A stretch of DNA of 64,000 nt from Haliotis rufescens (GCF_023055435.1 NW_025963890.1:64790001-64854000), one strand, 5' to 3'. Positions 47,301 to 64,000 are shown, numbered from the stretch's first letter. Notes: generated from the sequence alone by a model not told the origin. Numbers and translations: made by a program.

Positions 47301-50300
47301 GTATCTACGCTGTAGCGTCAGATCACGTGATGACAACTCTGCTTATCAACTCAAGGCAGTTTCCGGAATATGAGTCGGTTTAGCTACTAATAATGTCTTG
47401 AGTCAGATGTTATACAATTCTATGTATTGAAAGTGTTCTCTTATTTTCGTAACGAGAACCAGTGAAAAGTGGGTTAAGCATAAAGAAAGAAGAAAGATTA
47501 AACAGCCCTGCCTACTCAACAGTTTCGCCCTTGGCTGTTATCTTAATTCTATTTATTTAGAAACTGGGGATAATTAATGTCAGCTTGGCCCATCATCCAC
47601 CGCCTTGAGTCCTATGACTTTGTTGTATATAAACATATTTTCAAAATGAAGTTTACCAAGCACAGAGCAAGACACGACCAACCGGTTTTAAGACCTGTGC
47701 AGGTGTAGTAATGTCAAAGTGGTGCGTAAGGCGAAAGTAACATTGTTAGGGGCTCCAATGCCCTGAACCACAACGTTGCACAATTTTGTCGACCATTACC
47801 GGCAGGATTGGAGTGCTGGGGACACATGTTACCCCGGTTCCAAGCAGCATCCAAGCATCCTTGATATCTCGTATTTTGGGGTTCCCTTTATTTTAACGAG
47901 AACTTTTAAAAGTAGGTTAGCAATAGAGAAAGAAGAAAGTTTAAAGAGCGCTGCCCCCCCCCCCCCCCCCCCCCACACACACACACACACACTCCCCCCT
48001 CCCCAACACACATACACACATATACACACACACCTTATTTGGTGTCAAGAAAAGACAGGGCAAAACATGATGAGCCGATTGTTGGATCCGAGCTCAGTTT
48101 AAGACACATCTTACCCTGGTCTAAGCAGGGAAGATAGTTCAAAGACTCCTAAAACAATCCAAAATAACACCAACTACACCATCATGAACGCATTTAAGAC
48201 AATCATCAATGTCACAGGCAAACTAAAACCTAGGTGTAAACCCGAATATGCACAATATTACTAAATGTGCACCCTCATTAAACTTATGAACCGTTTAAAC
48301 AGCTCTTGGGACAAGAGCAGATGCCTTGTTACAAACATACTCCGGTTTTCACTCGCGCTTCCGCCCTAACTCACTAAGGGTAGAAATTAATAATGGGATG
48401 TGGGGGAAAGTAGAAGTTTGATAGATAGCTGGCTTCATGTGTAGGCTAGATGAGCTCGCGCCTTGTCACCAAGGCCATCCTATTTCACTTGAACCGAGAA
48501 CGTGGGCGTATTTGTTTTCCAGCGCCTCAATTGACCAGCTGTCAGTAAGGGTTGTCAGCTGGTGTTGGTCAGCTGGTGTTATCAGCTGATGTTGTCAACT
48601 GGCGTTGTCAACTGGTGTTGTTAACTAGTGTTGTTTACTGGTGTTGTCGGCCGGTGTTGGTCAGCCTATGTTGGGCAACTTGTGCTGTCAGCTGGTGTTG
48701 GTCAGCTGGCGTTGTCAACAGGGGTTGTCCGCTGGTGTTGTTTACTGGTGTTGTCAGCTGGTGTTGTAAACTGGTGTTGGTCAACTGGTTTTGGTCAACT
48801 GGTTTTGTCACTTGCATAGGTTACCACGGGTGAAGGGTGAGGTAAAAGAACAATAAGCATGAAGTAAAGTGTCGAGCCAGTATACAAGGTCACAGCCAAA
48901 GGTTGAGGAGGATACGGGTTGATGTTTTTCAAAAAGAAAGCATTCTAACTGTTGTGGAAAGAGACATGATGAAAAAAAATCTATTGAATATGATATTGAT
49001 TTGTTGACGATGACAAAATGATCTGAACTCTCCTTTTTTGAGACGCATATGTCTATTTTTCGAGGGATTTCACTGCTGCGAACATACTGTTAAATACAAA
49101 TGGTCTTATCAATAGGCCTTTCATGAGGGGACACTGTTAATGCGAAGAAAATGAAAGTAATATGCCATTAAATTAAATGAATTATCTGCTCTCGTCATAT
49201 AAACAACAGTTCAAAGAAAACAACGTTTGTAGGTTAACATTAAATAAGCAAGATGATGGATGAACAAATGTAATACTCATATAGAACAAATGTAAAACTG
49301 TTTTGCAAACCTTCTCGGTCTTTTGTGTTGAGAAACATACTAACGACAAAAGGAACTGTGTGTTATATGACATTCGATAAAAAATATATTTGTTCGAAAT
49401 GATGGTTGTTAATGAGCATACCTGGGGAATGAGCGTAACTTGTAATGAAGGCATTGCAAAAAGCGTTCCAATACAATTTCCAGGATACGGTACAAAACCA
49501 TTACTTTCTGCATTCTCGTAATTCTAGACGTGTATTTCAGAAGAATCACAGCTGAAATGTCAAAGCATTATAACAAGTAAAAATGCTCTGACGCTTTATT
49601 TAGAAAAAAACATTGCTCTAATTGTTTATTCACAACGCGGCTGAGCTTGGGACAGCTCTTCAAGCGGAATGGCGGGCAATCAAACGCAAATTAATCCAAC
49701 AGTATGTCATCAAAGTGTTGTGCATGTATCGCCCAACATGGCGAACACACCAGATATTGATCAGTCATTGTTCCATCCTTGTCACTTCATCACAAAACTT
49801 ATACAGATTAGGAACGGTGGAGTATTCTTGTGGTCCTAGCATTCGCTTGTAATGTCGAAGGCCTGGGTTTGATTCCCTTCATGGATACAATACGTGAATA
49901 TTGCTAAAAGTGGCGTTAAACATAAATCACTCACTCATACATATTATGACACTGTAACAAGTGAACATCGCCTTCTGGCCATGGGGTGTATCACTATGCG
50001 TTGTGTTCTCATTGGTATAGAAAGACTGTGCTTACTGTTGCAGCCATATCCCGTCCAGCCAGCTTTACATGAACAGTGACCGTTTGCCGTGTTACACGTT
50101 GACCTACACCCAGCTCCACATGATGTACAGGATTGCCCGTCCCTGTAATAGCCGCCACTGCATGCTGTAAATTAACACAAATTGTTCCAATGAGAAGTAG
50201 ACAATCATTGATAAACTGGGTATTTTGTACGAAACATCGTGAGCGTTGTATGGTTAGCATACTGAATCGTTGGGCACTGCAGGACCGTACTTCCAGTGTT

Positions 50301-53300
50301 TTGTGTTATACTTGAAAACAACTCACATAAAATGATAGCAATAATATTTTGCTTCACTGTGCGATGATATCTGGTGTATTCTCAGCACAGGTGTCGGCAA
50401 AATTACAATCAACCGAAATAATTGTGATACGATCCGTCTACTATTAGCCAAAAAAGAGCAGAGAACCTTCAGTATCACAGTAGCATTTAAGTACCATACA
50501 GTTATGCATAATGAACTGCTCATGCCACAGCAACGCATTACATCAGTATATATGATACAAAAAGAATACCAGTTTCAAATGAATTTTCAACGTATTTTTC
50601 CAACTGATGCATTTGCGAAAAATCTAGGCTCTTCACGTCTGTCTTCTGGAGCAATGCCAAAAGATCCAGGTCAGCTAATATTTAATTTGCATGAGTGAGG
50701 ATTCAAGGGTTTCGCTAAAAGGATCATGCCCCACTGGTGTATCCTTTGAAATCTTCGTAAGAAGAACATGAGAAATGGCTATTGACCATTATACAACGAA
50801 GCATAAAGTTTTCCATGACAATTTCCAGTATGCGGTACAAAACCATTACTTTCTGCTTTCTAGTAATTCTGGACGTGTATTTCAGAAGAATCACAGCTGA
50901 AATGTCAAAGCAATATAACAAGTAAGAATGCTCAGACACTTTATTTAGAATAACATTGCTCTTATTGTTTATTCACAACGTGGCCAAGCTGGGGATAGCT
51001 CTTTAAGCACAACCAAACGCAAATTAATTCAACAGTATGCCATCAAGGTGTCGTGCATGTATCGCCCAACATGGCGGACACACGAGATATTGATCAGTCA
51101 TTGTGTCATCCTTGTCACTTCATCACCAAACTTATACAGATTAGGGACGGTGGGGTATTCTTGTGGTCCTAGCATTCGCTTGTAACATCGAAAGCCCGTG
51201 TTTGATTTCCTACATGGATACAATGCGTGAATATTGCTAAAAGTGGCGTAAAACATAACTCAATCACTCATACATATTATGACACTGTAACAAGTGAACA
51301 TCGCCTTCTGGCCATGGAGTGTACCACTATACGTTGTGTTCTCATTGGTATAGAAAGACTGTACTTACTGTTGCAGCCATTTCCCGTCCAGCGAGCTTTA
51401 CATGAACAGTGACCGTTTGCCGTGTTACACGTTGACCTACACCCAGCTCCACACGGTGTACAGGATTGCCCGTCCTTGTAATAGCCGCCACTGCATGCTG
51501 TAAATTAACACAATGTTTTCCAATGAGAAGTAGATTTTGTACGAAACATCGTGAGCGTTGTATGGCTAGCATACTGTATCGTTGGGTACTGTAGGACCGG
51601 TACTTCCAGTGTTTTGTGTTATACTTGAAAACAACTCACATAAAATGATAGCAATAATATTTTGCTTCACTGTGCGATGATATCTGGTGTATTCTCAGCA
51701 CCGGTGCCGGCAAAATTAGAATCAACCGAAATAATTGTGAAACGATCCGTTTATTAGCCAGAAAAGAGCAGAGAACCTTCAGTATCACAGTAGCATTTAA
51801 GTACCATACAGTTATGCATAATGAACTGCTCATGCCACAGCAACGCACTGCATCAGTATATATGATACAAAAAGAATACCAGTTTCAAATGAATTTTCAA
51901 CGTATTTTTCCAACTGATGCAGTTACGAAAAATCTAGGCTCTTCACGTCTGTCTTCTGGAGCAATGCCAAAAGATCCAGGTCAGCTAATATTTGATTTGC
52001 AATAGTGAGGATTCCAGGGTTTCGCTAAAAGGATCATGCCCCACTGGTGTATCCTTTGACATCTTCGTAAGAAGAACATGAGAAATGGCTATTGGCCATT
52101 ATACAACGAAGCATAAAGTTTTTCATGACAATTTGCAGTATTCCGTACAAAACCATTACTTTCTGCTTTCTAGTAATTCTGGACGTGTATTTCAGAAGAA
52201 TCACAGCTGAAATGTCAAAGCAATATAACAAGTAAGAATGCTCAGACACTTTATTTAGAATAACATTACTCTAATTGTTTATTAACAACGTGGCCGAGCT
52301 GGGAATAGCTCTTTAAGCACAACCAAACCTCACATTAATCCAACAGTATGCCATCAAGGTGTCGTGCATGTATCGCCCAACATGGCGGACACACCAGATA
52401 TTGATCAGTCATTGTGTCATCCTTGTCACTTCATCACCAAACTTATACAGATTAGGGACGGTGGGGTATTCTTGTGGTCCTAGCATTCGCCCGGGTTTGA
52501 TTCCCTACATGGATACAATGCGTGAATATTGCTAAAAGTGGCGTAAAACATAACTCAATCACTCATACATATTATGACACTGTAATAAGTGAACATCGCC
52601 TTCTGGCCATGGAGTGTTCCACAATGCGTTGTGTTCTCATTGGTATAGAAAGACTGTGCTTACTGTTGCAGCCATTTCCCGTCCAGCGAGCTTTACATGA
52701 ACAGTGACCGTTTGCCGTGTTACACGTTGACCTACACCCAGCTCCACACGGTGTACAGGATTGCCCGTCCTTGTAATAGCCGCCACTGCATGCTGTAAAT
52801 TAACACACATTGTTCCAATGAGAAGTAGATGTTGTACGAAACTTCGTGAGCGTTGTATGGTTAGCATACTGTATCGTTGGGCACTGTAGGACCGGTACTT
52901 CCAGTGTTTTGTGTTATACTTGAAAACAACTCACATAAAATGATAGCAATAATATTTTGCTTCACTGTGCGATGATATCTGGTGTATTCTCAGCACAGGT
53001 GCCGGCAAAATTAGAATCAACCGAAATAGTTGTGAAACGATCCGTCTACTATTAGCCAAAAAAGAGCAGAGAACCTTCAGTATCACAATAGCATCTAAGT
53101 ACCATACAGTTATGCATAATGAACTGATCATGCCACAGCAACGCACTACATCAGTATATATGATACAAAAAGAATACCAGTTTCAAATGAATTGTCAACG
53201 TATTTTTCCAACTGATGCAGTTACGAAAAATCAGGGCTCTTCACGTCTGTCTTCTGGAGCAATGCCAACAGATCCAGGTCAGCTAATATTTGATTTGCAA

Positions 53301-63333: not shown

Positions 63334-64000
63334 CTGTAAATTAACACCAATTGTTCCAATGAGAAGTAGATTTTGTACGAAACATCGTGAGCGTTGTATG
63401 GTTAGCAACTGTATCGTTGGGCACTGCAGGACCGGACTTCCAGTGTTTTGTGTTATACTTGAAAACAACTCACATAAAATGATAGCAATAATATTTTGCT
63501 TCACTGTGCGATGATATCTGGTGTATTCTCAGCACAGGTGCCGGCAAAATTAGAATCAACCGAAATAATTGTGAAACGATCCGTTTATTAGCCAGAAAAG
63601 AGCAGAGAACCTTCAGTATCACAGTAGCATTTAAGTACCATACAGTTATGCATAATGAACTGCTCATGCCACAGCAACGCACTACATCAGTATATATGAT
63701 ACAAAAAGAATACCAGTTTCAAATGAATTGTCAACGTATTTTTCCAACTGATGCAGTTACGAAAAATCAGGGCTCTTCACGTCTGTCTTCTGGAGCAATG
63801 CCAACAGATCCAGGTCAGCTAATATTTGATTTGCAATAGTAAGGATTCCAGGGTTTCGTTAAAAGGATCATGCCCCACTGGTGTATGATTTGAAATCTTC
63901 GTAAGAAGAACATGAGAAATGGCTATTGACCATTATACAACGAAGCATAAAGTTTTCCATGACAATTTCCAGTATTCGGTACAAAACCATTACTTTCTGC

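Follow-up and report, generated by a model that had tools for sequence, protein, structure and literature searches.

Within a 64,000-nucleotide stretch of the Haliotis rufescens genome (NW_025963890.1:64790001-64854000, also C112 64790001-64854000, assembly xgHalRufe1), referred to here as the window, we characterized a tandem array of 1.3-kb units, each carrying one exon for an epidermal growth factor (EGF)-like module. We consider this array likely to be a coding macrosatellite in a receptor-type protein tyrosine phosphatase (PTP) gene, in which the unit has been amplified to 22 copies that encode a constitutive stalk of laminin-type EGF (LE) domains and that undergo unequal exchange under purifying selection. 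The anatomy of the array, its conservation, the splicing of its exons to one another and a recent difference in copy number from a twin locus were each established and carry this interpretation. Positions are those of the window; the 50 kb to its right were also analyzed, and "window-equivalent" denotes the same count continued past the window end.

Anatomy and extent of the array

A repeat search of the window identified 11 units between 49.5 and 64.0 kb, with a spacing of 1295-1334 bp and a mutual identity of 94-100%, and the same eight-cysteine peptide recurs 11 times in the minus-strand translation; TRF did not detect the 1.3-kb array because its longest period is 500. In all 11 units, the minus strand holds a 129-nt exon, bordered by an acceptor ending in ttaatttacag and a donor beginning with gtaag, which lacks stops and indels and encodes one 43-residue EGF-like module with eight cysteines. 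The exon is symmetric (phase 1-1), its final A and the first CA of the next copy forming a threonine codon. An earlier note, made from the sequence of the window, had described at least 11 near-identical exons of exactly this kind in 49470-64000, and its coordinates and junction letters proved correct; it had also anticipated that the array runs off the window. With the 50 kb to the right included, the array comprises 22 intact exons and reaches window-equivalent 80179, ~17.5 kb past the window. Its proximal edge lies at about 49456-49473, and at its distal edge (~81356-81442 window-equivalent) stands a truncated pseudo-exon that is interrupted by a stop and has one cysteine changed to glycine. 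A genome-wide search with the acceptor and exon-start pattern returned 39 sites: the 22 copies of this array, a further 16 in a twin locus (C112:65.095-65.118 Mb) and a lone, diverged copy. With a complete in-phase exon in each unit and very high identity between units, the array fits an exon-carrying coding tandem repeat of the LPA KIV-2 type. The features of the array in the window, all on the minus strand, are as follows; the three letters give the variable residues of each module.

49470..64000, minus strand: proximal 11 of 22 tandem ~1.3-kb units (exon and intron each); the array continues to ~81.4 kb window-equivalent
63205..63333, minus strand: array exon, 129 nt, phase 1-1, 43-aa eight-Cys module, variable residues Gly-Gly-Asn (GGN)
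61891..62019, minus strand: array exon, RGN; its unit is 100% identical to the unit of 52664-52792
60596..60724, minus strand: array exon, RGN
59264..59392, minus strand: array exon, REN
57955..58083, minus strand: array exon, GGN
56621..56749, minus strand: array exon, RGY
55308..55436, minus strand: array exon, GGN
53978..54106, minus strand: array exon, GEN
52664..52792, minus strand: array exon, RGN
51369..51497, minus strand: array exon, RGN
50036..50164, minus strand: most proximal array exon, with private K-to-R and P-to-S changes; its counterpart joins exon A (see below) in the twin-locus RefSeq isoform X1

Repeat elements were also observed in the units. A 90-nt piece of the unit intron (unit positions 403-495, e.g. 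window 49670-49760) has many matches on other chromosomes at 86-95% identity and is therefore probably a SINE-like element. One unit beyond the window (window-equivalent 74738-77081) contains, inside this piece, a 2.3-kb 5'-truncated non-LTR retrotransposon in the gene's orientation, with a 738-aa open reading frame (RVT_1, 6e-39) and a CAGAAT-repeat tail; because the twin locus carries the same insertion, the insertion is older than the separation of the two loci.

Conservation of the exons

Among the 21 complete units, 4 of 129 exon columns are variable, versus 159 of 1207 intron columns (Fisher p = 0.0003). No other 129-column stretch of the unit is as uniform as the exon, whose diversity (0.010, versus a median of 0.029 across such stretches) is about threefold below that of the intron (0.033), and over the first 100 nt of the exon, diversity drops to 0.001, thirtyfold below the intron; the 10 units inside the window alone give the same picture. 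The open frame, the eight cysteines and both splice sites are kept in 22 of 22 copies and, when both loci are combined (22 + 16), in all 38. The expectation that the exons were spared while the introns had filled with changes thus holds for the exon, which is significantly better conserved, but overstates the decay of the intron, as the units are 95-100% alike and the contrast in diversity is threefold. Judging from these comparisons, purifying selection is keeping the array exons and their splice sites intact.

The differences that do exist among the 21 homogenized copies consist of three non-synonymous sites (G/R, G/E and N/Y), confined to 13 nt in the last loop of the module and occurring in six combinations, plus one synonymous site. 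Positive selection on this variable loop was considered and dropped, since the changes among copies (5 non-synonymous versus 2 synonymous) are no different from the neutral expectation and the sites are too few.

Splicing of array exons in RNA

Sequence runs, in the form of assembled contigs, were compared over window positions 44201-50200. In run X15, letters 1-115 of a 159-nt contig extend up to the last base of the array exon (50036), and the remainder continues from its first base (50164), so that the contig "goes back 129". Its length equals 129 + 30, that of a closed cycle in a k = 31 graph, as expected of identical exons spliced in tandem. At the three positions where the most proximal exon has private changes, the contig agrees with the array consensus, and its variable residues are Gly-Gly-Tyr, the type of the four distal exons. 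DNA run X1 lacks this exon-exon joint, and the junction sequence was not found in the assembly even when one mismatch was allowed; this lack of a DNA counterpart indicates that array exons are transcribed and spliced to each other. Head-to-tail splicing of array exons in RNA, in frame from copy to copy as the earlier note had proposed, is thus supported by this contig. When a single module was compared with proteins of similar length, no match was found, so short RNA-derived peptides provide no support. The contigs of three RNA runs stop exactly at the borders of exon A with 9 mismatches in 150; from their sequence, these contigs probably derive from a paralog.

The host gene is a receptor-type PTP

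The remaining exons of the gene in the window, on the same strand as the array, are as follows.

44429..44578, minus strand: unique EGF-like exon A, 150 nt, phase 1-1, AG/GT; exact match to residues 753-801 of XP_048256336.1
43846..43989, minus strand: unique EGF-like exon B, 144 nt, phase 1-1, AG/GT; RefSeq peptide match
41790..41883, minus strand: transmembrane exon, hydrophobic run of ~23 residues, read directly from the translation
40895..41098, minus strand: juxtamembrane exon, family-specific, five copies on the chromosome
35544..40499, minus strand: PTP domain D1, eight exons, QTQSQY motif present
25563..35353, minus strand: PTP domain D2 and C-terminus, seven exons; WPQ in place of WPD; VHC motif replaced

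Exons A and B thus share the phase (1-1) and the AG/GT sites of the array exons. An exon-by-exon Pfam search placed Y_phosphatase (PF00102) matches on the D1 exons (profile positions 44-222) and on the D2 exons, in agreement with the receptor-phosphatase context that had been proposed, and direct reading revealed a single hydrophobic span (~23 residues) between the ectodomain and D1. All of the catalytic motifs of D1 are present, namely the HCX5R P-loop (spanning the exons at 37298 and 36357), WPDKDVP, KNRF and QTQSQY. From these features, D1 is active-looking and D2 resembles the usual degenerate second domain, and the window gene is, as far as its motifs indicate, a classical receptor-type PTP with tandem D1 and D2.

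When searched alone, one array exon scored 14.3 bits against EGF_laminin (PF00053), below the cut-off of 21, because the query is only part of a domain that straddles the exon junction. In XP_048256336.1, the protein of the twin locus, EGF_laminin reached 117.8 bits, its domain beginning at the second cysteine of the module, and Y_phosphatase matched two stretches at 6e-130. This starting point indicates that the LE domain straddles the junction and that each exon-exon junction rebuilds a full eight-cysteine LE domain. Pfam gave no EMI match on proteins P0013 or P0018, and the cytoplasmic part consists of two PTP domains. By these features the gene falls outside the MEGF10/Draper/CED-1 family, which is marked by an N-terminal EMI domain and a short NPXY/ITAM-type cytoplasmic tail. 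No immune-type domain or signaling motif was found.

The earlier note had suggested extending the window to the right in search of a signal peptide and distal domains, and this extension yielded candidate 5' exons for a signal peptide, a Cys knot, two exons of one domain, a Cys-rich exon and a Thr/Pro linker. The N-terminal exons matched no Pfam family. ESM Atlas returned an F5/8 type C-like lead for the head (score 0.93, 168 shared features, borderline), and bivalve relatives carry an F5/8 type C-like head; the head domain is therefore probably discoidin-like according to this model-based search.

The PTP exons of the window from 40499 onwards are also used in RefSeq XP_048256340.1 ("PTP epsilon-like isoform X2"), where they are joined to 5' exons of the upstream paralog (C112:64.915 Mb) and the array is skipped. 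Such a model has the appearance of a read-through, whether in the transcript itself or as an artefact of annotation.

Several repeats lie in the introns of the gene. Those of the PTP part contain (CA)n/(GT)n microsatellites at window 38686-38800 and 27221-27450, with a 14-nt difference between the twins in one of them. Between exon A and the array, the intronic segments 46250-46310 and 47139-47196 draw contig depths of 30,000 to 800,000 in RNA and DNA runs alike and belong to a repeat of very high copy number. A 13-nt repeat (TGTTGTCAACTGG) forms two arrays of about 20 copies each, at window 46466-46748 and 48551-48810, both of them inside an intronic duplication of ~2 kb with ~87% identity.

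Twin locus and copy-number change

The twin locus lies ~250 kb away on the same chromosome and contains 16 array exons. A profile-free search with a 42-residue module against 1.8 billion representative proteins retrieved one near-identical protein with 13 matched stretches, XP_048256337.1, which is isoform X2 of H. rufescens LOC124122701 and has 13 modules; isoform X1, XP_048256336.1 ("multiple EGF-like domains protein 11"), belongs to the same 90% cluster and has 16. By exact peptide matching, modules 1-16 of isoform X1 track the exon order of the twin locus one for one and are followed by exon A, exon B, the transmembrane exon and D1/D2, which indicates that RefSeq annotates the twin and not the window. 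Every non-array exon of the window gene from the Cys-rich N-terminal exon to 33318-33440 is identical to isoform X1 in this matching, and the last three exons match XP_048256340.1 instead.

Identity between the unique flanks of the two loci is 99.76% on a 14.8-kb stretch and 99.90% on one of 11 kb. The proximal unit, the four distal units and the inserted retrotransposon are common to both arrays. Unit-by-unit matching revealed different internal multi-unit duplications in each array, and the units form higher-order blocks, some units being 100% identical at a 9227-bp offset (blocks 99.5-100%). Since 22 and 16 units arose by different duplications between flanks that are only 0.1-0.24% apart, several unequal exchanges must have occurred during that little divergence. 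Copy-number change, which the earlier note had envisaged, is thus supported by the sequences and has been rapid; the comparison of 22 with 16 is one between two near-identical loci of one assembly.

High-fidelity (HiFi) reads of this genome average 15 kb, and its heterozygosity is 1.37% (PMC9709998). Given that the divergence of the flanks is far below this value and that the 3' exons differ, we think, without regarding it as proven, that the window and its twin are two real loci rather than two haplotypes. None of the sites that differ between the twins coincides with a variant in DNA run X1, an outcome that is uninformative on paralogs versus haplotypes. Five paralogs of the family stand in tandem on the minus strand of C112:64.83-65.17 Mb, their pairwise offsets being 255 kb and 192 kb; the arrangement, which rests on five juxtamembrane-exon matches, suggests that a block of at least 150 kb was recently duplicated, with one gene missing from the second copy.

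Discussion

In the mechanism that we propose, a 1.3-kb unit consisting of a 129-nt phase 1-1 exon and its intron has been amplified to 22 tandem copies, whose exons are spliced head to tail with every junction rebuilding a complete eight-cysteine LE domain. In the protein, some 22 near-identical LE modules in a row (about 946 residues) would stand between an N-terminal head (signal peptide, small Cys knot, probably discoidin-like domain and Thr/Pro linker) and the EGF modules of exons A and B; the two unique modules would be followed by the membrane span, the active-looking D1 and the degenerate D2. Unequal crossing-over and gene conversion, acting on one to seven units at a time, would keep the array uniform and also resize it, while purifying selection holds every exon and splice site intact. 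We infer that module inclusion is mostly constitutive and that the modules may make up a rigid stalk, on the length of which the ectodomain's reach or valency would depend.

Several observations weigh against this interpretation. Splicing from the array on to exon A, the transmembrane exon and D1/D2, as claimed in the earlier note, is found in the RefSeq protein of the twin, but no read or contig among those compared over 44201-50200 joins the window's own array to exon A. The array exon lacks any contig in two of the three RNA runs (X16 and X19), and the RNA status of the runs is the tool's guess, although their introns are empty. The HiFi reads of the assembly (~15 kb, PMC9709998) are too short to bridge the 31-kb array, so 22 is an assembly count and its exact value is unverified. 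Database protein searches did not retrieve a protein model with 22 modules, and the rigid stalk is modeled on known laminin-type EGF rods.

Regulation of receptor length could account for part of the same evidence: exon subsets chosen by cell or challenge, or copy number varying by individual, would tune immune or self-recognition. We regard such a diversifying receptor as unlikely, even though the RefSeq isoforms of the twin have 16 and 13 modules, the isoforms of a neighboring paralog differ by whole repeat units (1823, 1639 and 1547 aa), the twin loci differ in copy number, the three variable sites are all non-synonymous and shuffled among copies within one loop, and repeats of near-identical modules are also present in H. 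cracherodii and H. rubra relatives. The exons that separate the two RefSeq isoforms are identical in their last 30 nt, so short reads cannot assign the exon joined to exon A, and isoform pairs of this kind are artefacts to be expected in exon arrays, so that the 16- and 13-module forms may reflect ambiguous read placement; moreover, the changes among copies do not depart from neutrality, and the search for immune-type domains and signaling motifs was negative. The case for regulated skipping is this isoform pair, and the RNA contig shows array exons joined to each other without bearing on which subsets are included. A related possibility, that the array is a fast-evolving length polymorphism through which individuals, or cells by exon skipping, differ in the LE counts that set the contacts made or ligands reached, seems to us rather improbable. 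If it were true, the recurrent module amplifications in abalone would reflect selection on ectodomain length, for example in the recognition of self, gametes or microbes.

The near-identity of the two loci also raises the question of whether the picture is partly an effect of assembly, with two haplotypes of one gene placed in tandem or units miscounted in near-identical multi-unit blocks. The 99.8-99.9% identity of the flanks, the 99.5-100% identity of unit blocks at the 9227-bp offset, and the read length and heterozygosity cited above (PMC9709998) are compatible with such an effect, which we nevertheless consider doubtful: flank divergence (0.1-0.24%) is well under the genome-wide 1.37%, the 3' D2 exons differ by several residues so that the high-identity tract ends within the gene, the surrounding block of five paralogs with its two offsets is structurally different, and the proximal boundary of the array was found in the independent DNA run X1. 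Even if the two copies were alleles, the array would be length-polymorphic rather than unreal. Very unlikely, in our judgment, is a neutral recent amplification in which the protein merely tolerates the additional modules as passengers or leaves most array exons unused. The units are young (95-100% identical) and module duplications of different kinds are frequent in the family, but exon diversity is threefold below that of the intron (thirtyfold over the first 100 nt), the single copy at the array edge has decayed while frame, cysteines and splice sites persist in 38 of 38 copies, and spliced array exons reach a higher contig depth in RNA than the paralogous exon A. We therefore favor the coding macrosatellite with a constitutive LE stalk.

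This design is not hidden, as the earlier note had put it, because every exon of the twin array is already modeled in the eukaryotic annotation of NCBI; it is, however, undescribed in the literature that we searched. A module exon present at 16-22 copies, whose number changed while the flanks diverged by 0.1-0.2%, offers a natural experiment on how far a receptor phosphatase depends, if at all, on the length of its ectodomain, and the array provides a clean case of a coding macrosatellite under purifying selection outside vertebrates. It also carries a warning for annotation, in that the window copy lacks a dedicated protein model, one RefSeq isoform assigns its PTP exons to the upstream gene, and isoform counts for arrays of this kind are unreliable.

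Relation to known systems

Receptor PTPs with EGF ectodomains are widespread in molluscs (H. cracherodii, H. rubra, H. asinina, oysters, clams and Pomacea), where they carry borrowed RefSeq names such as "multiple EGF-like domains protein 10/11", "PTP epsilon-like" and "Notch-like". We know of no vertebrate receptor PTP with an EGF-repeat ectodomain, and a few literature searches found no functional study or paper on the molluscan proteins. These relatives, LOC124122701 included, share with the window gene an ectodomain of laminin-type EGF modules, a transmembrane span and tandem PTP domains. The closest is the twin, LOC124122701, whose non-array peptides match exactly down to exon 33318-33440 where compared; the window gene differs from it in having 22 rather than 16 modules, different 3' D2 exons and no protein model. 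In other relatives this module type occurs once or twice, or different, multi-module units have been amplified, as in the following proteins.

P0017, H. cracherodii: repeat unit of 142 aa, 4.6 copies
P0019, H. cracherodii: repeat unit of 193 aa, 2.5 copies
P0018, H. rufescens neighbor: repeat unit of 92 aa, 2.8 copies
P0023, H. rubra: repeat unit of 131 aa, 2.7 copies

On these comparisons, the window gene appears to be the extreme case, with its module present 22 times instead of once or twice.

Exon-carrying coding tandem repeats in humans include LPA kringle IV-2, the DMBT1 SRCR repeats and the CR1 long homologous repeats, in which unequal crossing-over alters copy number and copy number sets protein length. 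The H. rufescens array resembles them in its kb-scale units with complete in-phase domain exons and very high identity; it differs in having one exon per unit, a permuted LE domain and a receptor phosphatase as host, and in being known from one assembly. The phosphatase CD45 (PTPRC) has alternative exons 4-6, and large phosphatases are excluded from close contacts by size. Like CD45, the window gene encodes a receptor PTP in which ectodomain length could matter and in which symmetric cassette exons would allow that length to change without a frameshift; however, CD45 has three distinct mucin-like exons with proven regulated splicing, whereas the window gene has 22 near-identical EGF exons in an unrelated ectodomain. 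The best non-PTP sequence matches are MEGF10/MEGF11, Draper, CED-1 and PEAR1, which share runs of ~43-residue eight-cysteine laminin-type or atypical EGF modules. MEGF10-type proteins combine these with an EMI domain and a short phosphotyrosine-motif tail; with its tandem PTP domains and different head, the window gene fits the RefSeq name "MEGF11" in its repeats only.

Within the same genus, abalone VERL, the egg receptor for sperm lysin, contains 22 tandem ZP-N repeats homogenized by concerted evolution. It likewise presents a long extracellular array of near-identical modules kept uniform by concerted evolution; in VERL, however, the domain type and the gene are different and the protein is secreted or part of the egg coat, whereas the array gene places its modules on a receptor phosphatase.

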